Shown: piece by piece, positions 7,957 through 39,499 of the stretch
Layout: every line of letters starts with the position of its first letter
Numbering within the stretch: position 1 is the first letter of the stretch
Source: Macrostomum lignano
Taxonomy: Eukaryota
Reading direction: 5' to 3'
Assembly (NCBI GenBank): GCA_002269645.1
Contig: NIVC01004038.1
Location: forward strand, 1 to 63,369
DNA length: 63,369 bases
Notes under the pieces: model-generated
Databases searched by the model: none
The model's input: the letters and a program-made list of their open reading frames with translations, nothing else
Told to the model about the DNA's origin: nothing
Position numbers and translations under genes: made by a program

Positions 7957-7968
7957 CTCTCCCCGTTC
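7957..7968 (-). promoter_or_regulatory. Polypurine tract (GAACGGGGAGAG)
   Basis: Purine run directly abutting the TGT start of the 3' LTR on the minus strand. Confidence 0.8.
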
Positions 7969-14829: not shown

Positions 14830-14903
14830 GTTGAACTCGTCGTAGTCGCTGGCCGATGTCGTTCTTGAAAGAGCGGGTTGGCTTGGGTGTGTCGTAGTCG
14901 GAT

Positions 14904-14921
14904 CTCACCGCTGCGTCACCA
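14904..14921 (-). promoter_or_regulatory. Primer-binding site TGGTGACGCAGCGGTGAG (tRNA-Leu-like, with a 2-nt bulge)
   Basis: Begins TGG one nt after the CA end of the 5' LTR; matches the recalled metazoan tRNA-Leu 3' end apart from a 2-nt insertion and one mismatch. Confidence 0.75.
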
Positions 14922-14922
14922 G

Positions 14923-15965: not shown

Positions 15966-16889
15966 GCAAATTCATTTTTTAATCATTTAATATGCAAAAC
16001 AAAAATTTTCTTGTAAAAAAAATCGCTAGCGATTCGATGGCTATTCGCCAGCGATTATTCGCTGGCGATCACTCGTCACCAAATCGCCACTGAATCGCCA
16101 ACAGTTTTAAAGCAAGAAAAAATGAAATGACCAATTTTTTTTCGTGAACCACATTTGTTTGAAATCCCCAGAGGCAATATTTTGCCAAGAAAAAAAATCG
16201 CCACTAAATCGCGTCCTCGCCGGCGATTCGCCTGCGATTCGCTGGCGCCGTTCCCAGAGGGAAGGAATATAAATTAAATATGAATTGTTTCTACTGGCTT
16301 TTTTTGAACTTTAATCATAAAGACTAGAACTCGTATACCATCTTCTCTTCGGACGCGTAAATTTCAAGCGCAGTAAATCATTTTAAGCTGTTTAGTTGTC
16401 AAGCTTTTGTGACCTCGGAAAGCATTAATCGACCCCTTGCAGTCTATAATCAAAGAGAAGTGCTTAGGTTATTTCAAGCTAATTACGTCTTAAAGCTTTT
16501 CTACGTGAATTACTGCGGTGGTGGCAGCGACCTACTACTTCTGGTACTATATTTAGCGAATTCGTTTATTTTATTAAGTTCTCCGCGGTAGCGACTAATC
16601 TGCAATTGGCATTGAAAGAGACAGCATCAACAAGACAAGACCGCCCGGCTACGACCACAGCTACCCTCTCCCTGAGCCTGAGGAACTTAGCAGCCTGAGC
16701 TCCAATCTGCACCCCGAGTTTGTTTAACTTGTCGAACCGCCGGAAATCCAGCACCGATTTGAACGCGGCAAGAAACAACCCCCGATCCAAATACATAGCT
16801 CTATAATATATTGGCCAAACAGGCTAATTGCCTGAGCCAAATTCTCTTACTACTACTTACTACAATTCTCCGATCGGTCTCCCTAAAAC

Positions 16890-19200: not shown

Positions 19201-21103
19201 GTCATTAGCCTGATGCTTCCATACCTTCAAGAAGACAAAATTGCATGTTTCTAGCCTTTTTCTTTTATATTTAAAAAAAACAATCAAGCATTTGTTAAGT
19301 GTTGATTTTCAAGTTTTGTTTTATTATTTTTTAAACTGCTTTCCTGTGGCTTTTTTCAATAAGCAAAATGAAGGCCTATAAAATTCATATTATGGTATAG
19401 CTTTAATAAGTTGAAATTTCTGACTTTATAATATTTTTATTGCTATATACAAGTAGAAAAATGAGGCCAACTCCTCTGCTAGAGGAGAAAAGGGAAGAAC
19501 TCCTGTCACTGGAATTCCATTCCTTGAAATCCATCAGCTGAATCCCTTGACTCAAATCCCCTCATTCAATTAATCTCCAAAGAATCTCCAAAAAATCCTT
19601 TCCATAAAATTGAACATCATCAAAATCCTCTCCACAAAATAGAAATCTTTTCCATGAAACTGAAAACCATCAAAAGCCTCACCATCAAATAAAAAACAAC
19701 TCTCTGGACTTGGTGGCTAGGGTTAAGGTTAGAGCTGCTTAGAGCTATGTGTTCAAAGGTGCTGATACTATAAAAATTGAACCAAGTAAAACAATTGGTT
19801 GCACAATCAATTTCTCTGTCTGTCAGTATCAGTCTCAATTAAAGTTAACAAAATGATTGTGCAGTCTAAATCAACCCTCCAATACACAGCAACCAACCCC
19901 CTTCCACTACAGTGGCAATTAAAAATTGAAACCCCCCAACTGGTAGGGGTCAGTTGAAACCCCATTCAATCCCAAAATGTGTACAATCTTTGCAGAAAGT
20001 TAAAAGAATAGAAATTGTTTCTTTGAATGCTGTGCTTTTATTTTTCATACTTAAAGCAAAAAACTTATATTCCCAAACTCACCATTGAAAGATCTTTCTA
20101 GCAATATAAGTCTTTTCTTTGAAAGTTTAAAACTTAAGGAACAGTTTGCATTTGAACTTCCCAGTTTAAAGCATTGAATTTTTTAGTGTATATTCACTGC
20201 TTGCTACAGTGAGAGGCTTGCAAGTTTATGCATTGAATTTTACTGTTCGCCAGTTAGCAAGGGTCCAAGTGTACAAATGCAGCCACTTAAAACTCCCCAA
20301 AACCCATATTGGAGAGAAAATGCACTGCCAAGATAGGAAAAAGTTGTGGTGCAATTGCTCAAAATTGATGCAAATTTTCAGTTCAGAGCAGGAAAAGTGG
20401 CCAAAGAAGGTTAACAAACCAGTTTTCTGCTTTTTAACAGACTTAATTTAAAAAAATTCAACATTAAAATAGCCTATTTGTTGCATAGAAAAATTCTGCA
20501 TTGATATATATAAGTCCCGCATTTGAGTTGGCAGCCGTCTAAGAGGACATATGCGTTAAACCTGGTCAATCGACCAGTCTACTCAGCTTTAGATATAAAG
20601 AGAAAAACTCAATTAATATAGCATGATCACAGCTATATTGCTCATTTCAAGACTTTAAACTTTCACTTTGTCTATTTTTTACTCAAATAATATCAAAAAT
20701 AAGTCTAGATATTTTGTCTTTAAAGTGGAACAGTTTATTGAATCCCTTGTGTTATTTTTGTTTTGGGCCAAAGCTCTTGCCAATGTATGAATTTGTATAA
20801 ACACTAATTTCATTTTTCAACTGGTAGTATTGCCTAGTTTTGAATTTTTAAATCTCAGTTGGGATGCCATTTGTTTAGTTTTAAGGACTTATTGATGAGT
20901 AAAATGAAAAATATAAAAATCTGTATCAGATCTTTAAACTTATAAAATAAAAAATAGACTAATAATCTTCATAATAGTTTTTTTAAATGTTGAGTTGAGT
21001 GTTCCTTTTTCTTTGCCAATATGTTCTAATAGCCTTCCTCAAAATTGCTGGGGTGGGCTATTACTCGTACATTTGAATTCTGACTTTTCTGTTACCTAGA
21101 GCT

Positions 21104-24100
21104 ATGAGCGAAGACCACACGACAGTTGCTGAGATGCAGCCGCAGACTTCCATCTGTGCAGATGGCGATGAGGCAGCACCAGAGGGCTCATCAGCGACTC
21201 AAGAGGCAGCAGAAGAAGCGGCCGCAGAACCGGAAGTGGAAGCGGATGCAGACTCCCCACCAGTGTCGCTAAAGGTCATCTTCAATAAGCGCAAGATTGA
21301 CCTGACCTTGCCGGTCTCGGCTAAGGTCATCTCTCTGAAACGGCAGCTTCAGGAATTGACTGGCGTTCCGGTTGACATGCAGAAGCTCATGTTCAGAGGC
21401 CTCTGCCATGACGATCGGCGACTCAGTGAGCTCGGGGTCGGCGACGGTGCCAAGCTGATGCTCGTGGGCAGCACGCCGGACAGCTTGGCGTCGGTACGGC
21501 GTCAGGACGCGGCTGGCGAAGCGGCTGATGTCAGGTAGGCGATTCAGCTCGTGTGTGAGGTGGTGTGTCTGATTGTGGTCTGGCCGAGATTGGATGTGTC
21601 TGTCCGCTTGTGTCTGGTTGTGGCCTGGCCGAGATTGGATGTGTCTGTCCGCTTGTGTCCGCTTGTGTCTGGTTGTGGCCTGGCCGAAATTGGATGTGTC
21701 TGTCCGCTTGTGTCCGCTTGTGTCTGGTTGTGGCCTGGCCGATATATGATGTGTCCGTGTCTGCTTGTGGCCTGGCCGAGATTGGATGTGTCCGTCCGCT
21801 TGTGTCTGCTTGTGGCCTGGCCGAGATTGGATGTGTCCGTCCGCTTGTGTCTGCTTGTGGCCTGGCCGAGATTGGATGTGTCTGAGTCTACTTGTGTCTG
21901 GTTGTGGCCTGGCCGAGATTGGATGTGTCTGAGTCCACTTGTGTCTGGTTGTGGTCTGGCCGAGATTTGATGTGTCTGAGTCCACTTGTGTCTGCTTGTG
22001 GCCTGGCCGAGATGGGATGTGTCTGTGTCCACTTGTGTCTGGTTGTGGCCTGGCCGAGATTGGATGTGTCCGTCCGCTTGTGTCTGCTTGTGGCCTGGCC
22101 GAGATTGGATGTGTCTGAGTCTACTTGTGTCTGGTTGTGGTCTGGCCGAGATTGGATGTGTCTGAGTCCACTTGTGTCTGCTTGTGGCCTGGCCGAGATG
22201 GGATGTGTCTGTGTCCGCTTGTGTCTGGTTGTGGTCTGGCCGAGATTGGATGTGTCTGAGTCCACTTGTGTCTGGTTGTGGTCTGGCCGAGATTGGATGT
22301 GTCTGAGTCCACTTGTGTCTGCTTGTGGCCTGGCCGAGATGGGATGTGTCTGTGTCCGCTTGTGTCTGGTTGTGGTCTGGCCGAGATTGAATGTGTCTGA
22401 GTCCACTTGTGTCTGCTTGTGGTCTGGCCGAGATTGGATGTGTCTGAGTCCACTTGTGTCTGCTTGTGGCCTGGCCGAGATGGGATGTGTCTGTGTCCAC
22501 TTGTGTCTGGTTGTGGCCTGGCCGAGATTGGATGTGTCCGTCCGCTTGTGTCTGCTTGTGGCATGGCCGAGATTGGATGTGTCTGAGTCCACTTGTGTCT
22601 GGTTGTGGCCTGGCCGAGATTGGATGTGTCTGAGTCCACTTGTGTCTGCTTGTGGCCTGGCCGAGATGGGATGTGTCTGTGTCCACTTGTGTCTGGTTGT
22701 GGCCTGGCCGAGATGGGATGTGTCCGTCCGCTTGTGTCTGCTTGTGACCTGGCCGAGATTGGATGTGTCTGAGTCCACTTGTGTCTGGTTGTGGTCTGGC
22801 CGAGATTGGATGTGTCTGAGTCCACTTGTGTCTGGTTGTGGCCTGGCCGAGATTGGATGTGTCTGAGTCCACTTGTGTCTGCTTGTGGCCTGGCCGAGAT
22901 GGGATGTGTCTGTGTCCACTTGTGTCTGGTTGTGGCCTGGCCGAGATGGGATGTGTCCGTCCGCTTGTGTCTGCTTGTGACCTGGCCGAGATTGGATGTG
23001 TCTGAGTCCACTTGTGTCTGGTTGTGGTCTGGCCGAGATTTGATGTGTCTGAGTCCACTTGTGTCTGCTTGTGGCCTGGCCGAGATGGGATGTGTCTGTG
23101 TCCACTTGTGTCTGGTTGTGGCCTGGCCGAGATGGGATGTGTCTGTGTCCACTTGTGTCTGCTTGTGGCCTGGCCGAGATGGGATGTCTGTGTCCGGGTG
23201 AGCAATTTCGCTCAAACGTTGGTCCGCAGGTCGAAAGCGAACAATCCAGGCAACTCAGATGGCGCTGGCGCGGTTCGTCTGTCGCAGCGCGACCTGCACC
23301 GCCGAGTGCTGGACAAGTACGGCCGGCCGGACGACCTGACGCCCGGAATTCTCAATGCCAACTTGCCGCTGCCCCCGGCCCCGCTTAGTGGCATGTACAA
23401 TCGGCAGGGTGCCAAGGTATTTGGGGCCGTTTGACCTGAACTGCAACTAAGACTGGAGTTGTCCCACCGGCATGATAATTGCCCCTACAAAATGAGAATC
23501 ACACCCCCCCCCCAAACATAAGAATCGCCTCCCAAACATAAAAATCCCCCCAAACATGAGAATCGCCCCCCAAACATGAGAATTCCCCCCCAAAATGAAT
23601 ATGCCCCCCATGCTGAGAATGCCCTCCCCCAAACATGAGAATCGCCCCCCCCCCAACATGAGAATCGCCCCCACCAACACGAGAATCGCCCCCACCAACA
23701 CGAGAATCGCCTACACCAACACGAGAATCGCCCCCACCAACACGAGAATCGCCCCCCCCAAACACGAGAATCGCCCCCACCAAGACGAGAATCGCCACCC
23801 CAAACATGAGAATCGCCCCCACCAACACGAGAATCGCCCCCCCCAAACATGAGAATCGCCCCCACCAACACGAGAATCGCCCCCACCAACACGAGAATCG
23901 CCCCCACCAACACGAGAATCGCCCCATCAAACATGAGAATCGCCCCCACCAACACGAGAACCGCCAGCATCCGCCTGCCTGCCCGCAGGTTCGATTGACA
24001 TTCAAGCTGGAAATCGACCAGCTGTGGATCGGAACTAAGGAGCGCACCAACAAGATCCCGATGTCGTCAATCAAGCGGATAGTCAGCGAGCCCATCGAAG

Positions 24101-24219
24101 GCCAGGAGGCGCACCACATTGTCGGACTGCAGCTGGGCACCACAGAGCAGTCCATGTACTGGCTGTACTGGGTGCCCTGCCAGTACGTACGAGCTATTCA
24201 AACCACTATTGGTACTTGA
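21104..24219 (+). CDS. UBFD1: Ubiquitin domain-containing protein UBFD1 (about 282 aa); exons 21104-21534, 23230-23416, 23989-24219
   Basis: UBL domain (LKVIFNK...QKLMFRGL...LMLVGS) followed by PLSGMYN..G.KVRLTFKLE.DQLWIGTKERT...YWLYWVP, the conserved UBFD1 C-terminus; GT-AG junctions are phase-compatible. Confidence 0.93.
21560..23197. repeat. Intronic composite minisatellite (about 40-47-bp variants of CTTGTGTCTGGTTGTGGCCTGGCCGAGATTGGATGTGT)
   Basis: Tandem array filling UBFD1 intron 1; source of the 553-, 405- and 364-aa spurious ORFs. Confidence 0.95.
23480..23965. repeat. Intronic minisatellite, 21-bp unit (CACGAGAATCGCCCCCACCAA)
   Basis: Tandem array in UBFD1 intron 2. Confidence 0.93.
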
Positions 24220-24554
24220 TTTGCAGAGCTGCAAAGGTTCAACTGCATGCGCGAATGAAGGCTTTCTACTTGTTACATAGTTATGTTCCTTAGATCTACT
24301 TTCAGTTGCGTAATCATTCTGTTCCGTTCGCTCGGTAAATTATTTTTTTCTCTAATAGCGTACGCGCCCTCTGCTGTAAAACACTGCCCGAGATAAACTC
24401 TGGTCTCTATTCGCTAGGCATAATTTTTGCGGCAAGGTTTTTGCACTTTGACTGGCTGCCGCTACCCTTTGCCTACTTCAGGGGCCAAACAGTAACGATT
24501 TAAGCGCTCTGGCGAATGCTGCCTGCTGCGCTTGTGACAGAACCGCTTTCTGCT

Positions 24555-25325
24555 CAAATTCCCACATCACGGAGATCGCCCCAGTTACTCCAGAATCCTC
24601 TCCGCCACATCACGTAGATCGCCCCAGTTACTCCAGAATCCTCTCTGCTACATCACGTAGATCGCCCCAGTTACTCCAGAATCCTCTCCGCCACATCACG
24701 TAGATCGCCCCAGTTACTCCAGAATCCTCTCCGCCACATCACGTAGATCGCCCCAGTTACACCAGAATCCTCTCTGCTACATCATTGAGGTCGCCCCAGT
24801 TACTCCAGAATCCTCCTCGCCACATCACGTAGATCGCCCCAGTTACTCCAGAATCCTCTGTCTCACCGTGGAGATCTCCCCAGTTACACCAGAATCCTCT
24901 CTGCTACATCATTGAGGTCGCCCCAGTTACTCCAGAATCCTCTCTGCTACATCATTGAGGTCGCCCCAGTTACTCCAGAATCCTCTCTGCTACATCATTG
25001 AGGTCGCCCCAGTTACTCCAGAATCCTCTCTGCTAAATCATTGAGGTCGCCCCAGTTACTCCAGAATCCTCTCTGCTACATAATTGAGGTCGCCCCAGTT
25101 ACTCCAGAATCCTCTCTGCTACATCATTGAGGTCGCCCCAGTTACTCCAGAATTCTCTCTGCTACATCATTGAGGTCGCCCCAGTTACTCCAGAATCCTC
25201 TCTGCTACATCATTGAGGTCGCCCCAGTTACACCAGAATCCTCTCTGCTACATCATTGAGGTCGCCCCAGTTACTCCAGAATCCTCTCTGCTACATCATT
25301 GAGGTCGCCCCAGTTACTCCAAAAT
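24555..25325. repeat. Intergenic minisatellite, 43-bp unit (TCGCCCCAGTTACTCCAGAATCCTCTCTGCTACATCATTGAGG)
   Basis: Direct periodicity of 43 nt. Confidence 0.95.
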
Positions 25326-26321
25326 CCTTTGTCACACCGTGGACTTTATACAAAGTTAAATTTTCTGAGCACAAAAGTGTCCCAGACCACCTGTGTTCAT
25401 TGTTTAATGCGCTCTCATTTGTAACTCGCCTGTCCACTATCCATTGCAGTCCTTCTAATGCTTACGTTTCGCCAATTTTATTCAAGGGCTAACTTCGAAG
25501 CTCCTCAGTTGAAATTGTTGGTTCTGGTGCAACCGCTTTCTCATTTCAATTTCCCAACTTGGGAACTGAAGTACGCGAATTTATTTTCTTGATTTGGTAG
25601 TTTTCGGAGCTCTAGTGAGTTTGCTTTAGTGCGTTACTACTATTTTGTGCAGGCTTGTCAGTAGTATGCTCAACTTAATCAAGCCCAGGTGCGCCCAGAC
25701 AAGTGTAATATTGAGCGGCCAGTGCGGTTGGCACCTGCTAGCTGGCGGTGATTTTCATATGCATTCTCGCCGATTATGGTCAGTTTACTGTTTCTTTAAT
25801 AAAAGCAGACATTGCTTGTTCTTGTGGTTTTGCCAATTCTTTCGTATTTTTTGTTTTACTTTTGGCTCCCATCTCTAGTCTGTGCATACAATTCTAGGGG
25901 TCCTAGGCTCGAACTCTTATGTTGTCAATTGAATTGTCAAAGGTCAAAGCTCGATACTATAGCTACTAATACTAGTTTTAGGAGGTCATTGGTTCGATGT
26001 CTATTCTGGCCATACAATATTTAAAGGTCCTTCCCTCTTTCTCTCTCGAGTCGAGTCCTGCGGATTCTCGAGGCCTTTTTGCCCGGTCTCCAGCTTTGTC
26101 TTGGCTCATAGTTGCCCCATATCTTGCCTCAAGATTCACCTGCCGAAGTCCTGGGCTCTTTATTAGAGGCAGGGGGGTTGTGTGCACCCTGGCGCACTTT
26201 AAGCGACATAGGCACACAACCGGCGAGAGGCATTACTGCCCATTCCGCCGACTCCCCTGAGCAGGCATACAAGCGCGCGGATACGTACGCAGGCACACAC
26301 TCTCACAGGAGAGCGGCCCTA

Positions 26322-26512
26322 ACTTTATATTATCGTTAGGCATGTACACTTCACTGCGCCTTGGGGGGTTGGCTCTCAAGGCCGTTAATTGCACGAGCAA
26401 AGCCAAGCCGAGATTCCAATTCACCCCCAAATTAATGTGACTGCACTTGGAATTGAGCCTGGGTTGCTGGCACACCAGAGCAGCTGCGCTAGACCGCTGG
26501 GCTACGGCCCCC
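26322..26512 (-). mobile_element. tRNA-derived SINE, family A copy 1
   Basis: Minus strand starts GGGGCCGTAGCCCAGCGG (A box) and contains CAGGCTCAATTCC (B-box-like); related copies at 50228-50415 and 51631-51679. Confidence 0.75.
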
Positions 26513-26574
26513 TCGAGATCCTGGCCTCGATCTCATCGAATATTCTGGCACGCGATTTTCAGCAGTCCATCCTC

Positions 26575-28003
26575 ATGCGAAGTCGAGATCGGCGCCCAGC
26601 TTTACAGGTGGCCTCCATACAGCAGTCTGGCCATGATGCGGCTGAGGAGGCTACGCCCGCCTGCCCGCTGCACGGCCCCATGCTCGCCCTGGTGTTGCGC
26701 GACGGCGCCGGTCGATTCACCCGGCGCCACTGCTGCTCCTTCACCAGGCGGCCTGGCGCCTGCTCGGCCGAGTCCGGCGCGGCCTCCGCCTTGTCAGCGC
26801 CGAACTGCTGCCGCTTGGACGAAGCCCTCGCCACGCCGCGCCGGCTGCGCGCCTACTGCCTGGACTGCGGCCGGCTGGCACTCGGCAGCTCCGAGCTGGC
26901 GGCCTGCGCCACCCACCGGCTGCTGCCGCGGCTACCGAGGCGGCGCCTGCTGGCCCCCACCGGCTTCCTGCCGGCGCTCACCGCCCGGCAGTCCTCGCAG
27001 TACTTCTTCTCCCCGCCCAGCCTGGCCTACCTGCTCCGCCTGGTGCGCCGCCTCCGCTGCCGGCAGCTCGTCTGCGTCGGCTGCCCCCGCCTGCACGAGG
27101 CCGCCCGCTACGCCATCGGCGGCCGGCGCTGCCGCAGCCTCCTGCTTGACGCCGACCTGCGGTTAACCGAATTCTTCCCCGACTCTCTGGCCTTCAACAT
27201 GTTCAACGCCGCGTTCCTGCGACCGGGTGGGCGAGACAGATTCGTCAGCTGGCTGGCGGCCAAGCGGGGCTTGGACTCCGTCTGCCTCATTGTGGCTGAC
27301 CCGCCCTTTGGCGGCCTGCTGACCCCCTTGATGGACTGCCTGCAGCACCTGGCAGATCTCGCCGCGGCTGCCGGCCACTGCGAGGTGGGAAACTCTTGTT
27401 TTCACCTGACCTATCAGATCTGTCTCACCTGTCCTATCAGATCTGTCTCACCTGTCCTATCAGATCTGTCTCACCTGTCCTATCAGATCTGTCTCACCTC
27501 TCCTATCAGATCTGTCTCACCTGTCCTATCAGATCTGTCTCACCTGTCCTATCAGATCTGTCTCACCTGTCCTATCAGATCTGTCTCACCTGTCCTATTC
27601 ACAGCAACCGAGCGCCAACCCCTCCCCGCATTCCCGGCAGGTGTTCACAGCCGTGGCGGCGCCCTACTACCTGGGCAAGCGGTGGCTGCGGCCCCGGCTT
27701 AGCCTGCACGACTGCCAGCTGAGTTACGCCAATCACGCCAAGCTGCGCAGCGCCTCGGTCTCTGCCGTCCGCCTGTTCTCCAACGTGCCCGAGTCCCGCC
27801 TGCCGCCGCCTCCCGGCACCAGCTGGTGCCCCGTCTGCGCCCGCCACTCGGCCCACTGGAATCCGCATTGTGCAGCCTGCGGCACGTGCGCCACGGTGCA
27901 CCCGCCTGCCCGGCTGCACTGCCAGAGCTGCAACAGATGCGTCAAGGCCAAGTATATCGACTCCCACGACTGCCGGTCTGGCTTGTCGGCGAAGGAGAAC
28001 TGA
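26575..28003 (+). CDS. ZCCHC4: rRNA N6-adenosine methyltransferase ZCCHC4 (about 390 aa); exons 26575-27384, 27641-28003
   Basis: N-terminal CPLHGP zinc finger; QYFF..; VCVGCPRLHE; LLLDAD; FNMFN; catalytic DPPFGG; VRLFSN; Cys-rich C-terminus (C..C...N.HC..CG.C); phase-0 intron. Confidence 0.9.
27404..27598. repeat. Intronic minisatellite, 23-bp unit (TGTCTCACCTGTCCTATCAGATC)
   Basis: Tandem array in the ZCCHC4 intron. Confidence 0.93.
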
Positions 28004-28159
28004 GCTGCTTACAGAGATGCATTTGCTTGCGATGAAGAAATCTGCTCTGTACATTTCTGATGCACTTGAAACTGCCAGAATGCACCGTGCTCAATCTTCT
28101 TGAAGTCTAAACATCTTCGTTTTCTGTTTTGCTTTCTTTGTTACTTCCCAAGTTCGTAG

Positions 28160-28682
28160 GAAACTGCTGCTACCCCTCCATGTCACCTGAGTAGGCTGCT
28201 GCTACCGCTCCATGTCACCTGAGTAGGCTGCTGCTACCCCTCCATGTCACTTGTTTAGGATGCTGCTTCCCTTCCCTGACACTTGAGTAGGCTGCTGCTT
28301 CCCTTCCCTGACACTTGAGTAGGCTGCTGCTTCCCTGACACTTGAGTAGGCTGCTGCTTCCCTGACACTTGAGTAGGCTGCTGCTTCCCTGTCACTTGAG
28401 TAGGCTGCTGCTTCCCTTCCCTGTCACTTGAGTAGGCTGCTGCTTCCCTTCCCTGACACTTGAGTAGGCTACTGCTTCCCTGTCACTTGAGTAGGCTGCT
28501 GCTTCCCTTCCCTGACACTTGAGTAGGCTGCTGCTTCCCTTCCCTGACACTTGAGTAGGCTGCTGCTTCCCTTACACTTGAGTAGGCTGCTGCTTCCCTG
28601 ACACTTGAGTAGGCTGCTGCTTCCCTTCCCTGACACTTGAGTAGGCTGCTGCTTCCCTGTCACTTGAGTAGGCTGCTGCTTC
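28160..28682. repeat. Intergenic minisatellite, 27-32-bp unit (CACTTGAGTAGGCTGCTGCTTCCC[TTCCC]TGA)
   Basis: Tandem array between ZCCHC4 and CSTF2. Confidence 0.93.
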
Positions 28683-28737
28683 CGAAGTCCTTGAGCTGGC
28701 CTTATCTCACAAGCTCACCTAATCACGGATCGCTATA

Positions 28738-28754
28738 ACTCAATTTATTGCATG
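28738..28754 (+). other. Genomically encoded 3' end of a flatworm spliced leader (ACTCAATTTATTGCATG), ending on the CSTF2 ATG
   Basis: The 17-mer is seen directly. Its identity to the Macrostomum lignano SL 3' end (...GCGAAGACTCAATTTATTGCATG) is from memory and needs verification. Confidence 0.75.
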
Positions 28755-30581
28755 CAATCCAAAATGGCAGCCCCAGGCCCCCAGCAACTGCAGCAGCAGC
28801 AGCAGCAAATGCTTCAGCAGCAGCAAGCCGCGGCTGACAGGCAAAGCCAAGGCCAGCGCGAGCGCGAGGCCCTGGAGCGGACCGCCCGCTCCATATTCGT
28901 TGGCAACATCCCCTACGAAGCGTCTGAGGACCGGCTGAAGGAGATGTTCGAGCAGGCCGGGCCCGTCATCGGCTTCCGCCTCGTGTATGACAGGGAGACC
29001 GGCAAGCCCAAGGGCTACGGCTTCTGCGAGTACAAGGACCTGCCTACCGCCCAGGCTGCCCTGCGCAATCTGCAGAATATCGAGTTCTGCGGCAGGCCGC
29101 TGCGCATCGGCCCGGCCGCTGGCGAGCAGAACCAGCAGCAGCAGCAGCAACAGCAGGACGGCCAGGGCCATGGCCCCGGCGTCTCCGGCCCGCCAGTGGA
29201 CTCGCCTTATGGGGAGAAGGTGGGAGCGGGAGCTCTTGGGATTCTGTATGCTGTAGGGAGGGATAAGCGGCAGTGGATGTGGACACAGGGAAGGGGGTAA
29301 GGGACAAAAAAGGATAAGGGTCAGGGAAGGGGGTAAAGGACAAAAAAGGGATAAGGGTCAGGGAAGGGGATAAGGGATGAAAAAGGGATAAGGATCAGGG
29401 AAGGGGAAAAGGGACAAAAAAGGATAAGGGTCAGGGAAGGGGATAAGGGACAAAAAAGGGATAAGGGTCAGGGAAGGGGATAAGGGATGAAAAAGGGATA
29501 AGGATCAGGGAAGGGGATAAGGGACAAAAAAGGGATAAGGGTCAGGGAAGGGGATAAGGGACAAAAAAGGGATAAGGATCAGGGAAGGGGATAAGGGATG
29601 AAAAAGGGATAAGGATCAGGGAAGGGGATAAGGGATGAAAAAGGGATAAGGATCAGGGAAGGGGATAAGGGATAAAAAAGGGATAAGGATCAGGGAAGGG
29701 GATAAGGGATGAAAAAGGGATAAGGATCAGGGAAGAGGATAAGGGACAGGGAAGGGAATAAGGGACAGGGAAGGAGATTAGGGAGAAGGAAGGGGATAAA
29801 GGACAAGGAAGGGTACATGTTAAGCAAGAGGGAGGTGATAAGCGAGATGAGTGAAAAGCTGGGATAAGAAACAACAATGTAAATTCAGGTAAAAAGCCAA
29901 CCCCAAATCGCCCAGGTGGACCCAAAGAACGCGCCGGAGGAGATCAGCCGGGCGGTTGCCAGCCTGCCGCCCGAGCAGATGTTCGAGCTGATGCGTCAGA
30001 TGAAGCAGTGCATTCAGAACAACCCGCACGAGGCCCGCAACATGCTGCTGCAGAACCCACAGCTGGCCTACGCCCTGCTGCAGGCTCAGATTGTGATGAA
30101 GCTGGTTGACCCCAAGGTGGCCATCGCTATGCTGAGCAGAACCACTGAGCAGATTCCGCCCGTAATGCCAGTCGATCAGCCAATGCAGCAGCAGCAGCAG
30201 CACTACCAGCACCAGCCGCCTCAGCCTCCGCAGCCTCCGATGCAGCAGCAGATGTACCACCATCACCAACCGCCGCCGCCTCCGCCACCACAACATCAGC
30301 AGCAGATGTACCCGCAGCAGCAGCAGCAGCAGCCGTACCGCCAGCCGCCACCGCCGCCGCCGCCCCAGGCGCAGCCGCAGCAACCGCAGCAGCCGCAGTC
30401 TTCGCAGGGCAGCGGCGCTCAGCTGTCGATGGGCGCCATCGCCGGCGGAGATCAGGAGAAGGCGGCGCTCATCATGCAGGTGCTGCAGCTGTCAGATGAG
30501 CAAATCCACATGCTGCCTGAGGACCAGCGCCGGTCCATTATGATTCTTAAAGAGCAGCTGGCCAAGGCTGGTCACATCTGA
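28752..30581 (+). CDS. CSTF2: Cleavage stimulation factor 64-kDa subunit (about 377 aa); exons 28752-29219, 29916-30581
   Basis: RRM (SIFVGNIPYE...KPKGYGFCEY); hinge (ISRAVASLPPEQMFELMRQMK...QNPQLAYALLQAQ); C-terminal EKAALIMQVLQLSDEQI.MLP..QR.SI.ILKEQ; phase-0 intron. Confidence 0.96.
29297..29790. repeat. Intronic purine-rich minisatellite (about 34-35 bp; GGGATAAGGGACAAAAAAGGGATAAGGGTCAGGGAAG)
   Basis: Tandem GGG-rich array in the CSTF2 intron. Confidence 0.92.
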
Positions 30582-30892
30582 CTCAATGTGTGCTCATTGC
30601 CGCTGTCATTTATTCACTCTGGTTTAGTGCCGGCTTAGGCATCAGGCATTGTTCCTGCTGATCTCTGCTGGTGTTCCGGTACTGGCTGGCTACTAGTAAA
30701 CTGTTGATAGGACAATGCAAAAGCTAATCAACTCTGCTGTCATTCTGTAATGTTTGCTACTCAATGACTGTTCAATATGATCAATTAAAATGTTCCTGTG
30801 CAAAATATTTTTGGCTTCTGGGTTTCAGTGTTCGTTTTTTACCGAGTGTGCATATCAGAAGCTGTTTGCATCAGGTTGCCGCCTTGTCCTTG

Positions 30893-31067
30893 TCCTTCAG
30901 TGAGCTGCTGCACCCCTCTCTCGATCCTTCAGTGAGCTGCTGCACCCCTCTCTCAATCATTCAGTGAGCTGCTGCACCCCTCTCTCAATCATTCAGTGAG
31001 CTGCTGCACCCCTCTCTCAATCCTTCAGTGAGCTGCTGCACCCCTCTCTCAATCATTCAGTGAGCTG
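30893..31067. repeat. Intergenic minisatellite, 32-bp unit (TCAGTGAGCTGCTGCACCCCTCTCTCAATCAT)
   Basis: About 5 tandem copies between CSTF2 and RBM7. Confidence 0.9.
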
Positions 31068-31168
31068 TTACCTGTTACATCCTGATCCTAGTCCTTCAGA
31101 AAGCAGTCCCCAAGTATCTCAAAGCATTCACAATGGTGCATTTTACTTTTGCAGCGTTTCTGGACTTC

Positions 31169-32498
31169 ATGGACGACAATAGCCGCGAGAGAACCCTGTG
31201 GGTTGGCAACCTGGGCCCCGATGTGACTGCGGACCTGCTCACCGAGCTCTTCCTGCAGTCCGGCCCGCTCGAGTGTCCCGTGAAACTCGTGGCCGGCAAG
31301 GATGGCAAAAATGGCTACGCGTTCGTCACCTTCAAACACGAGGAGTCGGTGCTCTATGCCTGCCGCCTGTTTAGGGTGAGTGGCGTCTGCCAGATGCCGT
31401 GGCACAGGCAGTGATGCAAGTAGTGTCACTGGCAGTGATGCAAGTAGTGTCACAGACTGATGCAAGTAGTGTCACAGACAGTGATGCAAGTAGTGTCACA
31501 GACAGTGATGCAAGTAGTGTCACAGGCAGTGATGCAAGTGTCACAGACAGTGATGCAAGTGTCACAGACAGTGATGCAAGTGTCACAGACAGTGATGCAA
31601 GTGTCACAGACAGTGATGCAAGTGTCACTGGCAGTGATGCAAGTAGTGTCACAGACAGTGATGCAAGTAGTGTCACAGACAGTGATGCAAGTAGTGTCAC
31701 AGACAGTGATGCAAGTAGTGTCACAGGCAGTGATGCAAGTGTCACAGGCAGTGATGCAAGTAGTGTCACAAGTAGTGAGTATTGTATAGAGAGACTGTCA
31801 CAGGTAGTGAGTATTATTACAGATACTGTCACAGGTAGTGAGTATTATTACAGATACTGTCACAAGTAGTGAGTATTATTACAGATACTGTCACAGGTAG
31901 TGGGTATTATTACAGATACTGTCACAGGTAGTGGGTATTATTACAGATACTGTCACAGGTTAGTTGAGCTCACCCACCATCCTGTCATCTTGTTGCGCAG
32001 AGTTTGCGCCTGTGCGGCGCCGAACTCCTCGTGAAGCCGCGCCAGGGCAGCGGCCACGAGCGCCAGTGGCAGGAGATTCTGCCGACAGAGCGGCTGGCCG
32101 ACCGGGAACGGGCCGACAGAGCCGCTCGGGAGGCCCGCAGCGACCACCGGCGGCAGCATCAGCGCCACCGCCAGCTTCCGCAGCCTCCGATGCCGCCGCC
32201 GCCCCCGCCAAGCTTCCCTCTCCTGCCTCCGCCGCAGCTGCCGCAACATCAGCGCCAGCATCAGCAAGCTGGCAACTTTCTGCTGCCGCCGCCACCGCCG
32301 CTCCCTCCGCCAGTTGTTCACCACCAGCAGCACCATCATCAGCAGCATCATCAGCACCACCAGCATCAGCAGCACCAGCAACATCACCAGCAGCATCATC
32401 AGAATCAGCGCCACCATCAGCAGCACGGCATTAAGCGATCAACCAGCGACAGCGGATTCAACAGCCACTATGGCCGAAATAAGCAGGCCCGATTTTAA
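31169..32498 (+). CDS. RBM7: RBM7/RBM11-family RRM protein (about 234 aa); exons 31169-31375, 32001-32498
   Basis: RTLWVGNL...VT..LL.ELFLQSGP...YAFVTFKHEESV.YA..LF..LRL.G..L.VKPRQGSGH matches the RBM7 RRM; Q/H/P-rich tail; strong upstream acceptor TTTTACTTTTGCAG at 31141-31154. Confidence 0.85.
31405..31960. repeat. Two adjacent intronic minisatellites (21/24-bp GCAGTGATGCAAGT[AGT]GTCACAG; 31-bp CTGTCACAGGTAGTGAGTATTATTACAGATA)
   Basis: Tandem arrays in the RBM7 intron. Confidence 0.92.
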
Positions 32499-32844
32499 AC
32501 AATACGGTTGCCCATACGAGCTAACGACAGATGAAAAATATATTCGCGTCGGGGTTCCTGGATCGATCAATATTGATTTTTCTCAGTCTGCGATGCATTT
32601 GAGCAGCTTTTTTTGTTTCTTAATTTTAGTTTCAGCTTTGAATAGCTCGTAAATAATGTGCATCAATTTGCTTGTAAACAGTTTTTCACTGGGCACTGTA
32701 AGCAGTGCGCTCCTTCTGTCTACTATAAGTACTGTACTAAGTGATTGTTTCTCTCTTGTAAAAATTCCGGTGCTTTTATGAAGCTAAATTGATGACGGTG
32801 CTGGCTTGTATTTTTATATGCATATGCTTACTAGATTATACTCA

Positions 32845-33128
32845 ACCTGAGGCTAGATAAACACTCCCTCTCAAGTCTCAGGTAAACATTCTGTCTCAGG
32901 CTAGGTAAACACTATCTGAGGCTAGGTAAACACTCAATCTCAGGCTTGGTAAACACTATCTGAGGCTAGGTAAACACTCAATCTCAGGCTTGGTAACCAC
33001 TTTATCTCAGGCTTGGTAAACACTATCTGAAGCTAGGCAAACACTTCATCTCAGGCTTGGTAAACTCTATCTGAAGCTAGGTAAACACTATCTGAAGCTA
33101 GGCAAACTTTTTATCCGGCTAGGTAAGT
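32845..33128. repeat. Minisatellite upstream of NUBP2 (about 21-23-bp alternating units with CTAGGTAAAC)
   Basis: Tandem array ending in CTAGGTAAGT. Confidence 0.88.
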
Positions 33129-33172
33129 GCCTCATATTTTTGCAAGACAGACAGCCAACCTCGCTGCAATTG

Positions 33173-34164
33173 ATGATGTCCGAAGGCAGCAGCGGTCCCC
33201 GGATCGACACGGCTCTTCTGGTCCTGTCCGGTAAAGGCGGCGTCGGAAAGTCGACAGTCAGCGTGCAGCTGGCGCTGGCCCTGGCACAGGCGGGCCACAG
33301 GGTCGGCCTGCTTGACATCGACCTGTGCGGGCCCAGTGTGCCGCGAATGCTGGGTCTGGAGGGCCAGCGGGTTCACCAGTGCCCGGAGGGCTGGGTGCCG
33401 GTGCACCTGAGGCTGCCCGGAGCTGCCTCAGACGGCGCCGAACTCCTAGTCATGTCGATCGGCTTCCTGTTGGAAGGTCGAGACGATCCAGTGATTTGGC
33501 GGGGCCCGAAGAAGACCAGCATGGTGGGCCAGTTTGTGCGGGATGTGCACTGGCAGCGGCTGGACTACCTGGTGGTAAGTGGCAGCACTGCAGTAGTGTG
33601 GGGTTCAGCAGTGTCAGATTGAGCAGTCAGCAGTGTCAGATCGAGCAGTCGGCAGTGTCAGATCGAGCAGTCGGCAGTGTCAGCCTCCACCCTATTCCCG
33701 GCCCATCCCAGGTGGACACACCTCCGGGAACCACGGACGAGCACCTGGCAGTGCTGGAGGCGCTACCAGTCGGCTCGGCCTGCCGCAGGCGCGGCGCGGT
33801 GGCCGTCACGACGCCGCAAATCGTGGCCGTCGGCGACGTCCGCCGCGAGCTGGACTTCTGCGCCAAGACGGGCCTCGCCGTGCTGGGCATCGTGGAGAAC
33901 ATGAGCGGCTTCGCCTGCCCGCACTGCGCCGGCTGCAGCAACCCGTTCTCCAGTGGCGGCGGCCGCGAGCTCGCCAGGGCCAAGGCGCTGCCCTTCCTCG
34001 GCTGCCTGCCGATCGACCCCAGCCTGGCGGCCTGTCTGGACGAAGGCCAGGCGGCCGGCGCCAAGGCGCTGTCGTCGCCAGCTCAGCTACTGGCGCAGGA
34101 GGTGGCAACCAGACTGAGGGAGCAGCTGGATAGGGAGGCGGCTGCTGGTGGGGACCAGGCCTAG
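33173..34164 (+). CDS. NUBP2: Cytosolic Fe-S cluster assembly factor NUBP2/Cfd1 (about 284 aa); exons 33173-33574, 33712-34164
   Basis: Deviant Walker [11 protein letters not shown]; DIDLCGPS; VIWRGPKK; VDTPPGT.DEH; VTTPQ; ENMSGF.CPHC; lacks the N-terminal Cys cluster of NUBP1. Confidence 0.95.
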
Positions 34165-34320: not shown

Positions 34321-34883
34321 TTCACACCAATGGTTGCCCATCAGTGAGATCTGTTTTTTTGTAACGCAGCCGCACAGCTGAGCTAATTTAAACTCGTAGT
34401 TTTGGCTTTGGAACCCACAGCACTTGCAGTTGGCGCACTTTGATAACATTGCTTCGGTGCATTTGAGGAGACTGAAAACCCAGCTCCTAGCTGGAGATCG
34501 ACTTGGTTTCAATACTTATTCTGAATTATCCTTGGCATCTGTAGTTTATTCTGCTTGTTGATTGATTTCGCTCGCAGATTCTATTGCCATCATTTCATTG
34601 ATTGCTATCCATGCCGACTGCTTCTGCCTTCAGGCATCAAGTTTCTTTGATTGTTTAATTTTAACATTTCGTTAATTAATAAAATATCTTCAACTTTCTG
34701 ATTTACATGTACGCATTACGCCACTTATGACGTCATTTTTTGATAAGTAGTATGCAACTAGTTCAAAAGAATCTGCCTTTTATGGAGTCAAATTCATTGT
34801 TAAATAAGCTGATCAGAGATGCAGTAAAGACTACTTTATCGGCTGCGTACATGCATATGGTGTAAATACTAGCATATTGGTTG

Positions 34884-36706
34884 TCATAGCAACACAGTAT
34901 CTGCTGCCAGCCAAGCAGTTGCCAGGGCGGCTGCTATCCAGTAGTAGACTGCTGCAGCACTGGTGCCGCCGGCTGCGGGCTCTGCGGCCAGCATGAGGCC
35001 GGCCTGCAGCTTGGGGGCCGCCTGGCCAGAGTTGCAGCCGGGGTGCCGGCACACTCGCTCGTACTCGAACATCGGGTAGTTGCGGCCGTACACCGAGCTG
35101 GCGTGCGGCATGCAGTCGGCGAGGTACATCGCCGACTCGAACGCCCGACCGTTGTACTTGATCTGCCGAGTCAGCTGCTGAAGGGGAGAATCGGGAGGGG
35201 CAATTAGCACTGTTGTTCGATGATCTTCCATGCAGCCATCCGCTTCCACGCTGAATCTTTAATATCGGAGTACTTTGAACTATGGCATATTGGCACTCTG
35301 GTCAATGTTGGTTTTAGCTACTAATAGTAGTTCAAACAGTAGCGAGCCTTTTACCACTTCCTTATCACCACTGCCCGCTGCTATCAGCGCTGGAAGCCGC
35401 TTGATTCGCATTGCGGTGATTTATGCCAGCTGATAAAGGCTGGCACACTGCATGTACAGCTGACTGCCGCTGAGTTCCAGTCATGTGCGTGTGGCTGCCA
35501 AGCCACTGCTAATGAATGCTGGCCCTATTAAGGATTTTTTTCGCCTTCATCGCGCGGACTTGTTTTAGTTCCAGCTCGAAGTTTTTTGAAAAACATTCTG
35601 GGCGGCGCCGTTGCGCAGTTTTTGCCGGCTTTTCCAGAGCTGACAGCGCCAGCGAATAGTTGAACTGCAGTGGTGGGTTGCGGGGGAGCCCGCCTGCTGT
35701 CTTCACTGTTGGGGCCTTCCTCGACCGCTAATGGCGATGGCGCATGCACTTCAGTTTGTTTGAAATTCAGCGTTTTTTATTATTAGTTTTGGGAGCCGTT
35801 AGCGCTGCGTTGGTTCGTTAGCGCGTCTTTAACTGCTGAACTGGGCCGGGTTGCTTCACAAGACGGAATTCGAGTTGCGGTGGGGTTGGAGCTTCGAAAT
35901 TGAGTTTAGGTTTAATGAGACCCTTGAAACGCACCTTGATGTGACTCGACAGCCAGACGAATGGACGGACACACAGACAGACCCACGGACAGATCGACAG
36001 ACACTAAGACAGACAGACAGACAGACCGACAGATGCAAACAGAGACAGGTGACAGGCAGTTGCAGACAAGATAGGATGAGAAAGTACATGTACTCAATGA
36101 GGCGCCTGGAAGCTTGCGCAGGCAGTTCATGCACATCATACTGTTAGAGCCAAGCAGCCACTCCGCAAGTGCAAACCTCTCTTCTAAAGCGGCTTTTAAA
36201 ACGCATCGCGATTCGCGAAAGCAAACTTTTAAAGAAGTTGGGTTTATCGTACAGCCTGTTGACATCCTCTCGACATCAAAGAGCAACAGGATGAACAAAG
36301 CTTCTGGCCACTAGGAATGTGAAAGCGGCAGAAGAGCTGCTCCTAAAAGTGACCGAAGGAGACAAGCCTAGCCTACACGTCCAGCACAGCTTTCCTTTTT
36401 GCTTCCTGACAATGCAGATTTACATGACTACTCTGGCTTTCACGTCTCTGACCGCGGCTCTGCGTACTATGCGTTCTACCAGATGTAACTAGGCAGCGAC
36501 TGAAGCATGCGTTGGGTGGCCTGGGGGCTGCCGTGACGGGAGACAGCAGTTGGCGCTGGGCTGTCAGCAGTGCGTAGGCGAGGGTGAGGGAGACGCCAGG
36601 AGGACATGAGAGAGAGAGCAGTGTGCAGTGAGACTATATCTATCTATCTGACGTCTGTCTGTCTATCTATCTATCTATCAATCTATCTATCTATCTATCT
36701 ATCTAA

Positions 36707-36778
<72 letters not shown>

Positions 36779-38920
36779 TCATCCACCCCAACTGCAGCCC
36801 AGCTCACAGCTAGCAGGCACACCGGTGTCTGCACCAGTTTCCCGCCTGCCCTGCTGTCATTGACTGCGTTTGTCAGCTCCAGGACTCTGTCGCTGCACGG
36901 CTGCAGCTGGAACTGGTCGATGCGGCGGCCGTGGCCAACCCAGCAGTGCAGCCGGCGCCGCGCCCCCGTCTCGCCGCTGCCCAGCCAGTTGTTGTTGCAG
37001 CCGCTGCTGTTGCAGTACATGGTAGTGCGGGCGTTGAACATCAGCGAGGCAAAGTCTGGCAGCTGCGAGCCGCCGCCGGAGGAGCGCTGGCAGCTCCGGG
37101 CCGCGTGCACGATTGTGCTGCTGGCGTCCTGGAGGAACGCCACCTGCCATTTGGATGATTCAGTTTGCAACGTAGTGGAAATTATGGCCGATCACGAAAC
37201 GCAACCCAATTCAAGAGCCGTGACCGAAGCCTGCCCAAAAGCATAATCTTTCCTCTGATTCCTAAAGTTAAAGTCTGTAGACTTACATTAAAGCCCAAAA
37301 ACCATCAACTCTGAAACAACTATGGACCCAAGCCCCTGAACCCAAGCCCCTGAACCCAAGCCCCTAAACCCAAGCCCCTGAACCCAAGCCCCTAAACCCA
37401 AGCCCCTGAACCCAAGCCCCTAAACCCAAGCCCCTAAACCCAAGCCCCTAAACCCAAGCCCCTGGACCCAAGCCCCTAAACCCAAGCCCCTGAACCCAAG
37501 CCCCTGGACCCAAGCCCCTGAACCCAAGCCCCTGAACCCAAGCCCCTGAACCCAAGCCCCTGAACCCAAGCCCCTAAACCCAAGCCCCAAACCCAAGCCC
37601 CTGAACCCAAGCCCCTAAACCCAAGCCCCAAACCCAAGCCCCTGAACCCAAGCCCCTAAACCCAAGCCCCTGAACCCAAGCCCCTGAACCCAAGCCCCTA
37701 AACCCAAGCCCCTGAACCCAAGCCCATGAACCCAAGCCCCTGAACCCAAGCCCATGAACCCAAGCCCCTAAACCCAAGCCCCTAAACCCAAGCCCATGAA
37801 CCCAAGCCCCTAAACCCAAGCCCCTAAACCCAAGCCCCAAACCCAAGCCCCTGAACCCAAGCCCCTGAACCCCCCTGAGCCCAAGCCCCTAAACCCAAGC
37901 CCCTAAACCCCCCTGAGCCCAAGCCCCTAAACCCAAGCCCCTAAACCCAAGCCCCCAAACCCAAGCCCCTGGACCCAAGCCCCTAAACCCAAGCCCCTGA
38001 ACCCAAGCCCCTAAACCCAAGCCCCAAACCCAAGCCCCTGAACCCAAGCCCCTGAACCCAAGCCCCTGAACCCAAGCCCCTAAACCCAAGCCCCTGAACC
38101 CAAGCCCATGAACCCAAGCCCCTGAACCCAAGCCCATGAACCCAAGCCCCTAAACCCAAGCCCCTAAACCCAAGCCCATGAACCCAAGCCCCTAAACCCA
38201 AGCCCCTAAACCCAAGCCCCAAACCCAAGCCCCTGAACCAAAGCCCCTGAACCCCCCTGAGCCCAAGCCCCTAAACCCAAGCCCCTAAACCCCCCTGAGC
38301 CCAAGCCCCTAAACCCAAGCCCCTAAACCCAAGCCCCTGAACCCAAGCCCTTGAACCCGAATTGCCGCAATCCAGCAGGCCTCACCTTGCAGGCGTGGCC
38401 GTCACCGCAGGGCTCCAGGCGCACGCGCCGGCCAGAGGCGCAGTCCGGGTTGTTCAGCGGCATGGCCATGTGCTTGTAGAACACGCAGGAGAGGCAGCTC
38501 AGAGGATCGTTCGATGCCGAAGCAGCTGCTGGTTGGAGAAGCCACTCAGTTTGATTAATTGATAAATAATAAATGGAAGATATACCCTGTAGCTATACAA
38601 TTCAAGCCAAAGAAATATTTTAGCAAAAAATAACAAAGCTCTTGAAACTCTAGAAGCGAATTTTCGTTTCTTAGAAATTAGGTGCCTCTTTTCTAACACT
38701 GAAATTTCGAGTTTGAGACAGTGTCCCAGAATCAAGAGTAAGAATTCTCAATGGCTACTAAACAAAATTATCAATGCACTGGAAGTATTGAGTCACAGAG
38801 ATATGCAGCCTCAAGCTTCATAGCCTGATGAAGATTCTGAGGCACAGCCTCACCTGAACACGAGCTGCAGAGGAAGACCAGCAGAAGCAGAAGCACAAGC
38901 AGACTCCGCCGACTCTTCAT
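34884..38920 (-). CDS. Secreted, putatively GPI-anchored protein with two Ly6/uPAR (three-finger)-like domains (about 279 aa); exons 38920-38854, 38528-38386, 37143-36808, 35177-34884
   Basis: Signal-peptide exon MKSRRSLLVLLLLLVFLCSSCS; LSCLSC...CNSSGCN and LHC...VCRHPGCN domains; hydrophobic C-terminal tail; all four exons join with GT-AG in compatible phases. Confidence 0.8.
36640..36777. repeat. (ATCT)n microsatellite
   Basis: Direct. Confidence 0.97.
37326..38357. repeat. Intronic minisatellite, about 14-bp unit (AACCCAAGCCCCT[A/G]), telomere-like C/G skew
   Basis: Tandem array in intron 2 of the Ly6-like gene. Confidence 0.95.
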
Positions 38921-39499
38921 CGTGACCGGCCTGCCAAGGGAAATCAAAAATGCTCAAGCTTTGATCTGCATGGGTCTGCGGTTCAGGCTTGAATGAGACA
39001 GGCTCACTGAATAGCCGCCAGCTCGCGACAGTCAAAGACCTGAGAGGCATGCATTAGGCAGTCAGATGCCAAACTGCAGGGCTGGGGCGGGTGGAGACGG
39101 GCAGACAGAGGTTAGATAGCTAGGCCAAGTTTGAGTTTCTTGAGCACTTCAAGCGGGTGGAGACGAGGTGGCTTAAGGTTTTCTAGCGTTAGAATGCTGC
39201 GCCGCTCCGCCTGCACCTGGGCCGCCTTCTCTCTGCCCCTGACTTGCTCAGCTGACCGGGCCACAATTGCGTCTGGAGTTTCTGGCCCGGCAAGTGCGCG
39301 CTTATTATGTGCTCGACCTGAGCTGCCTTCTCTGAGCAGAGCAGGCACTCCGGTATCAGAGCGAAAATTTAAATAAAATACTCAGCGCTTTCTTCTGGTG
39401 TACACTTGGAGCATTTGGGATTGTAGGGCGCTCGTGCACTGATTGCTGGGGCACCTAGCTCTGACCAGCGATAATTCTACGAGTATATATCCATGCCGC

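Follow-up and report, generated by a model that had tools for sequence, protein, structure and literature searches.

Spliced-leader (SL) operons have been described genome-wide in the flatworm Macrostomum lignano, and they are the system closest to the locus reported here, a run of five same-strand genes (UBFD1, ZCCHC4, CSTF2, an RBM7-like gene and NUBP2) on scaffold NIVC01004038.1 of assembly GCA_002269645.1 (Mlig_3_7). The whole scaffold, 63369 bp, was analysed and is referred to below as the window. A single 35-nt leader, CGGTCTCTTACTGCGAAGACTCAATTTATTGCATG, which ends in AUG, is added to 30% of M. lignano genes, and ~15% of genes lie in operons of two to nine genes; acceptors follow the motif [T/C]TNCAG (YTNCAG), repeats enlarge the operon spacers, and the criterion for an operon spacer is a length of <1 kb after repeat subtraction (PMC8629364). 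Operons of two genes make up 75% and those of three genes 18%, with a maximum of nine, and SL-spliced and operonic genes are generally conserved housekeeping genes. In the annotation pipeline, transcription units are cut wherever SL-trimmed reads peak and wherever T-fill reads mark a poly(A) site, and ~7% of units are multi-SL. The present cluster shares with the published operons (PMC5730564; PMC8629364) the species, the assembly, the single 35-nt SL, the YTNCAG acceptors, the housekeeping gene content and spacers enlarged by tandem repeats and transposons, with no difference in kind; its five genes place it in the upper tail of operon size, and the deposited annotation splits it into three units.

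Two other systems are more distant. The SL2-type operons of Caenorhabditis elegans are likewise same-strand clusters with one promoter and 3′-end formation coupled to SL trans-splicing; however, the one SL of M. lignano is not accompanied by a specialised SL2 (PMC8629364), and the ~100-nt spacers of C. elegans contrast with raw, minisatellite-rich spacers of 573–2343 nt here, so that the cluster is not of the SL2 type. The operons of parasitic flatworms, such as a trematode operon with enolase as its second gene, are similar in downstream SL trans-splicing and in an SL ending in AUG, with a median intercistronic distance of 99 bp where untranslated regions (UTRs) are known (PMC12582326), but their gene content is not shared and the neighbours of CSTF2 differ.

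Gene models were built by joining open reading frames (ORFs) at canonical GT..AG sites, and deposited coding sequence (CDS) ranges were compared over window positions 18758–40581. Five complete plus-strand CDSs were obtained in 21104–34164, in this order:

21104–21534, 23230–23416, 23989–24219, plus strand: gene 1, UBFD1 homologue, 282 aa
26575–27384, 27641–28003, plus strand: gene 2, ZCCHC4 homologue, 390 aa
28752–29219, 29916–30581 (exon 1 from 28755 after the predicted trans-splice junction), plus strand: gene 3, CSTF2 (CstF-64) homologue
31169–31375, 32001–32498, plus strand: gene 4, RBM7-like, 234 aa, Mlig030697.g1
33173–33574, 33712–34164, plus strand: gene 5, NUBP2/CFD1 homologue, 284 aa, Mlig030697.g2

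An earlier sequence-only reading of this DNA had listed five co-oriented genes with stop-to-start gaps of 2355, 748, 587 and 674 nt, and the reconstructed CDSs reproduced these values exactly. No minus-strand gene interrupts the run in the deposited annotation.

Domain and PDB matches bore out all five names, the fourth as RBM7-like. UBFD1 contains ubiquitin (PF00240) and PH_UBFD1_C (PF25343) domains (E 5e-50). ZCCHC4 contains the N6-adenine methyltransferase domain PF10237 with a DPPF motif, and its sole PDB match was ZCCHC4 itself (6uca, E 4e-35), over residues 73–381 including DPPFGG and the C-terminal cysteines; with a DPPF methyltransferase domain followed by a Cys-rich CCHC region, gene 2 is a predicted ZCCHC4, the 28S rRNA m6A methyltransferase. 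In CSTF2, the N-terminal RNA recognition motif (RRM; PF00076), the hinge (PF14327) and the conserved C-terminal domain (PF14304) each scored above cut-off, and the top homology matches were named orthologues across animals; the deposited CSTF2-family protein on this scaffold is PAA48844.1. The RRM of gene 4 matched RBM7 chains best in the PDB (E 5e-16) and RBM11 second (E 4.5e-12), its best matches outside Macrostomum were named RBM7 homologues, and its C-terminal half is of low complexity (His/Gln/Pro); the gene is RBM7-like by its RRM, and membership of the NEXT complex is putative. Gene 5 encodes a Mrp/NBP35-type P-loop ATPase (NUBP/ParA domain PF10609, E 5e-87) with a CPxC motif (CPHC) and no N-terminal Fe-S cysteine cluster; it is nearest to CFD1, the yeast NUBP2 (best PDB match 6g2g, E 1e-83), and a paralogue is labelled NUBP2 homologue in UniProt. 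Exact look-ups of the complete UBFD1, ZCCHC4 and CSTF2 (MQSK...) proteins and of two guessed RBM7 isoforms gave no match; the deposited models either are 5′-partial or lack 18 nt of a His/Gln repeat. The latter difference concerns PAA48845.1, which lacks six His/Gln-repeat residues encoded in the genome at 32325–32426 (18 nt, CAG/CAC repeat); a micro-gap in the annotation or a difference in repeat length between transcript and assembly would account for it.

Paralogous copies of the whole cluster lie on NIVC01003158.1 (L001) and on NIVC01000741.1 (L003/L005), and a further copy, L004, comprises UBFD1 only, ending 2 kb after this gene with no further junctions. Gene order and strand are common to the three copies of the cluster, and the window is 98.9% identical to L001 over 6 kb. 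Array lengths differ by kilobases between copies, with splice sites and exons unchanged: the array in intron 1 of UBFD1, for example, spans 1.6 kb in the window and is nearly absent in L005.

The last two genes, 4 and 5, make up a bicistronic unit that has already been published. Gene 4 is PAA48845.1 (BOX15_Mlig030697g1) of the same contig, and PAA48846.1 (BOX15_Mlig030697g2) matches gene 5 exactly from the third residue on. Both belong to unit Mlig030697.1, shown with two trans-spliced genes in Supplementary Fig. 5a of Wudarski et al. 2017 (PMC5730564) as an example of multiple trans-splice sites, with gene boundaries taken from SL reads and 3′ T-fill reads. In models derived from the older ML2 assembly (including UniProt A0A1I8J2N3 and a 334-aa NUBP2 model), CSTF2, RBM7 and NUBP2, or the latter two, appear as one fused protein, a mis-annotation typical of operons. 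The L003 annotation of the RBM7-like gene is limited to a fragment of 96 aa (13905–14195).

At the 5′ end, genes 1 and 2 are joined by a deposited read-through transcript, which uses two sites:

24183–24188, plus strand: GTACGT, alternative 5′ splice site in the last UBFD1 exon, 12 codons before the stop
26556–26562, plus strand: TTTTCAG, acceptor of ZCCHC4, the cis acceptor in PAA48843.1 and probable SL acceptor

The first deposited gene (Mlig023456) covers 21092–27166 as a UBFD1-ZCCHC4 fusion. Rebuilding its CDS as 21092–21534, 23230–23416, 23989–24182 and 26563–27166 gave 475 aa, identical residue for residue to PAA48843.1. This protein results from splicing of donor 24183 to acceptor 26562, and therefore an RNA spans gap 1. 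The fusion drops the last 12 UBFD1 codons and continues into ZCCHC4 exon 1, where ~200 codons are read in the wrong frame. A UBFD1-ZCCHC4 fusion is annotated in L001 as well (525 aa). In L003, ZCCHC4 is a separate 5′-partial CDS beginning 10 nt after the AG equivalent to 26562, and the TTTTCAG is intact in all three copies. The acceptor at 26562, previously described as unpaired, is thus paired with donor 24183; it is used in cis and, we infer, in trans, and the fusion mRNA probably arises as a side product when cis- and trans-splicing compete for an operon acceptor.

The spacers between the genes contain the following features:

24564–25328, no strand: 43-bp minisatellite in gap 1 (0.77 kb; ~5.1 kb in L005, the third paralogous copy)
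25798–25803, plus strand: AATAAA, the sole canonical poly(A) signal in gap 1, ~760 nt 5′ of the ZCCHC4 acceptor, of presumptive use
26161–26529, no strand: ~369-bp window-specific insertion with a ~15-nt target-site duplication (CGARRTCCTGGSCTC), missing from both paralogous copies
28164–28683, no strand: minisatellite with a 27–32-bp unit, 70% of gap 2
30784–30789, plus strand: ATTAAA, candidate CSTF2 poly(A) signal
30896–31067, no strand: 32-bp minisatellite in gap 3
32840–33107, no strand: minisatellite with a 21–23-bp unit in gap 4
34678–34683, plus strand: AATAAA 3′ of NUBP2, where the cluster probably ends

The gaps had been described as largely minisatellite, and tandem arrays indeed account for 29–70% of each stop-to-acceptor gap (765/2343, 520/751, 172/573 and 268/677 nt for gaps 1–4). 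Subtracting the arrays leaves 231, 401 and 409 nt for gaps 2–4, with the 3′ UTR still included. Gap 1 retains 1578 nt, or ~1210 nt when the 369-bp insertion is also removed (3′ UTR included); counted from the AATAAA at 25798, it amounts to ~760 nt, or ~390 nt without the insertion, which ends 33 nt 5′ of the ZCCHC4 acceptor. The insertion gave a by-eye impression of a SINE-like, tRNA-derived element, which neither ARAGORN nor Rfam supported with a tRNA-related call. Minisatellites (21–47-bp units) also make up most of all six introns of the five genes (21535–23229, 23417–23988, 27385–27640, 29220–29915, 31376–32000 and 33575–33711), and tandem arrays cover ~40% of 21104–34164.

Taken together, we consider it likely that the cluster is one five-gene SL operon of the ordinary M. 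lignano type. RNA polymerase II would start in or near the AT-rich DNA 5′ of UBFD1 and transcribe all five genes, and every upstream mRNA would be freed by cleavage and polyadenylation. The 35-nt SL would be trans-spliced to YTNCAG acceptors 0–14 nt before the start codon, forming the 5′ ends of the downstream mRNAs at junctions 26562/26563, 28754/28755, 31154/31155 and 33175/33176, and perhaps at 21091/21092 for gene 1. Minisatellites and one transposon insertion would have enlarged the spacers and left the unit unbroken. The genes share one strand with no opposite gene between them, and trans-splicing of the downstream genes is indicated by published SL signals for genes 4 and 5 and, indirectly, by the L003 CDS that begins 10 nt past the TTTTCAG of gene 2 and by SL letters at the predicted junction of gene 3 together with an intact TTTCAG in L001, as detailed below. 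Gaps 2–4 lie within the <1000-bp distance, as does gap 1 if the AATAAA at 25798 is used. Candidate signals for 3′-end formation precede internal trans-splice sites in gap 1 (AATAAA 25798) and gap 3 (ATTAAA 30784), and T-fill reads have been published for genes 4 and 5. A polycistronic unit had been proposed from the sequence alone, and this proposal is documented for genes 4–5 by the published unit and for genes 1–2 by the read-through PAA48843.1; across gaps 2 and 3, at which the deposited annotation breaks the run into three units, we infer continuity, as we do a single promoter.

Several observations weigh against a single operon. Gap 1 exceeds 1 kb after subtraction of tandem repeats alone, and canonical poly(A) hexamers are absent from gaps 2 and 4, which contain variants only. 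The deposited names form three units, Mlig023456 (UBFD1-ZCCHC4), Mlig006421 (CSTF2) and Mlig030697 (RBM7-NUBP2). About 60% of trans-spliced M. lignano genes lie outside operons (PMC8629364), and trans-splicing alone is no proof of polycistrony. By their sequence similarity the three copies are recent duplicates, and their common order says little on selection. CSTF2 has different neighbours in Schistosoma spindalis (a convergent cullin gene) and in Echinococcus granulosus (genes for an RRM protein, an unknown protein and VPS11).

Some of these points would suit two or three independent same-strand units (UBFD1 with ZCCHC4, CSTF2, and RBM7 with NUBP2) with their own promoters in or near the minisatellite gaps, trans-splicing of CSTF2 and RBM7 merely removing a short outron. 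The three name clusters and the preponderance of non-operonic genes among trans-spliced genes are as this arrangement would predict, and the ~400 nt of non-repeat DNA in gap 3 offer room for a compact promoter; however, gap 2 has just 231 non-repeat nt, ZCCHC4 3′ UTR included, and gaps 2 and 3 are both under the published 1-kb threshold. We regard separate units as possible, though on the unlikely side. One five-gene operon is preferred to them because, according to the annotators, assembled units split in repeat-rich operon spacers (PMC8629364).

The trans-splice site of CSTF2 came to light through letters of the SL itself, and a related pattern was found at NUBP2:

28738–28754, plus strand: 17-nt perfect match to the SL 3′ end (ACTCAATTTATTGCATG), directly before CAATCCAAAATGG
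33167–33175, plus strand: CAATTGATG directly before ATGTCC; the probable real NUBP2 acceptor is CAATTGCAG, its last letters overwritten by the SL

The sequence-only reading had found acceptors for only four genes, passing over CSTF2; this gene most likely has one too, masked in the assembly by SL letters. No second such 17-nt match exists in the window, against a chance expectation of 0.01. At the same site, L001 reads ACTCTGTTGAATTTCAG followed directly by CAATCC, a canonical acceptor of equal length that keeps the TTTCAG, and L003 shares the letters of the window. In the three-copy alignment, 13 positions read SL instead of outron, eight of them differing, with no indel. The CSTF2 trans-splice junction is most likely 28754/28755, as judged from this alignment; the genomic ATG lies at 28764, and initiation at the SL AUG would give an in-frame extension, MQSK.

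At NUBP2, the copies form a nested series: L001 reads caattgcTG, the window caattgATG and L003 caatGCATG, with 1, 2 and 4 SL-ward substitutions, respectively. The substitutions extend leftward from the junction, and therefore an original TTGCAG before ATG is predicted. Two chimeric gene models of the ML2 assembly, from two different copies, both read PTSLQLQMSEGS (LQLQMSEGS; TTG CA(G/A) ATG), and the annotated partial CDS of NUBP2 begins at 33179. Judged by these letters, the real junction is probably 33175/33176. The site at 33146, earlier taken as the NUBP2 acceptor, lies upstream of the annotated 5′ end at 33177–33179.

Polishing of Mlig_3_7 with Pilon using RNA-seq is documented, and it is the sole documented route for RNA letters into the assembly. 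The SL letters at CSTF2 and NUBP2 are, on the comparison of copies, most likely an artefact of this polishing that marks real trans-splice sites, in which case TTGAATTTCAG would most likely be the underlying CSTF2 acceptor letters within 28742–28754. CSTF2 would seem to lack an acceptor, and NUBP2 to have an odd ATGATG start, because SL letters were written in during polishing. Eight mismatches are fewer than the default limit of ten in STAR, so SL-bearing reads could align across the junction. SL letters replace the last 1–13 outron nt (28738–28754, 33171–33175 and 21089–21091, and the matching L001 and L003 sites), to an extent that differs between paralogues. A scan of the window and the paralogous loci for further SL tails gave only 6–8-nt matches, about the chance level, and we found no publication describing SL letters overwriting acceptors in Mlig_3_7. 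A search of Logan found no M. lignano transcript or DNA contigs for CSTF2, and two unspliced ORFs spanning the junction were unrecorded.

Alternatively, the 17-nt SL tail before CSTF2 could be real germline DNA, with cDNA of a trans-spliced mRNA written over the acceptor in two paralogues out of three. Two copies do carry the identical 13-nt replacement, the upstream ACTC is a possible microhomology, and another gene with SL sequence at its 5′ end has been reported in two assemblies (PMC8629364). Against this, the replacement substitutes letters without any change in length, RNA-seq was used in the Pilon polishing, and the nested 1/2/4 substitutions at NUBP2 with unaltered ML2 TTG CAR ATG in two copies have the look of a systematic artefact; the nested series and the ML2 letters together therefore make independent cDNA conversion in three copies implausible. 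We judge a germline origin very improbable. Were it true, the SL-donated AUG would become a genome-encoded start and the copy would be freed from trans-splicing inside an operon.

The remaining acceptors were compared with the annotated 5′ ends of the genes:

21085–21091, plus strand: TTTTCTG, abutting the annotated UBFD1 5′ end (partial CDS from 21092)
31147–31154, plus strand: TTTTGCAG, acceptor of the RBM7-like gene (annotated 5′-partial CDS from 31157; SL signal published for Mlig030697.g1)

All four acceptor strings quoted in the sequence-only reading are present at their coordinates; those at 26562 and 31154 fit annotated 5′ ends, and those at 21099 and 33146 do not. The CCTAG at 21099 lies inside the annotated UBFD1 transcript, whose CDS begins at 21092. 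At that 5′ end, the window, L004 and L005 read ttttcTG/ttacc and L001 reads ttttATG/ttacc, the differences pointing toward the SL tail ..GCATG; none of the four copies compared has CAG. This pattern is suggestive of a TTTTCAG trans-splice acceptor at 21085–21091 with position −2 overwritten by an SL letter. Acceptor strings by themselves are weak evidence: YTNCAG occurs on the plus strand at 0.003 per nt, which gives at least one per 30-nt stretch in ~8.6% of cases by chance. Taking the paralogue and ML2 evidence into account, a YTNCAG acceptor stands 0–14 nt before the ATG in at least four genes, for which the chance is ~2.5e-4 from the same rate. Moreover, the 5′-partial deposited CDSs of four gene models begin at 21092, 28758, 31157 and 33179, 0–3 nt past the predicted junctions, and cutting of units at SL-read peaks (TBONE) yields such starts.

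Use of the SL AUG as an initiator is a familiar idea in flatworms. Joined at the predicted sites, the terminal AUG of the SL is in frame and stop-free in four of the five genes, adding MLPRA, MQSIL, MQSK and M; in the RBM7-like gene only, it gives an out-of-frame upstream ORF of 24 codons. The chance of an in-frame AUG in at least four of five genes is ~0.045.

That the five genes are monocistronic, adjacent by chance, with their own promoters and fortuitous acceptor-like strings is hardly credible: a single YTNCAG near a start codon is indeed not unusual, but the published unit and the read-through transcript already contradict it for pairs 4–5 and 1–2, SL letters stand at two junctions, and 5′-partial CDSs begin at the junctions.

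The surroundings of the cluster were also examined. Upstream, 4–5 kb of DNA at 23–41% GC are followed by a long terminal repeat (LTR) retrotransposon. This element, of the Ty3/gypsy type, lies on the minus strand at ~7500–16000, with gag, protease/RT/RNase H and integrase ORFs of 390, 990 and 745 aa enclosed by two repeats that have an ORF in common (7575–7940 and 15598–15975). Downstream, the cluster is bounded by a convergent gene:

34884–38920, minus strand: deposited CDS of 279 aa without a Pfam domain, downstream cluster boundary

A TTGGCAG lies 10 nt before the ATG of this gene (38921–38935, minus strand) and is kept in L003; the gene is probably SL trans-spliced too, with the SL AUG out of frame. 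Scans for tRNAs and Rfam families gave no match in the cluster, the sole hit being an unrelated tRNA-Val at 55.5 kb.

The operons of C. elegans are rich in RNA-processing and other housekeeping genes, and a link between CstF-64 and the SL2 snRNP exists in that species. The sequence-only reading had pointed to a component of the operon-resolving 3′-end machinery within the unit; that CstF-64 lies in this operon because CstF resolves operons is speculation, to which the present analysis lends no support. As an operon, the cluster is of a known kind: spacers enlarged by repeats are documented for SL operons throughout the M. lignano genome. The SL letters are of wider consequence: apparently written over acceptors at some genes in Mlig_3_7, they can hide real acceptors, create false genomic ATGs and lower counts of the acceptor motif, which has been reported at only 9551 of 21754 SL sites. 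This is relevant for the design of transgenes, guide RNAs or motif analyses on Mlig_3_7.

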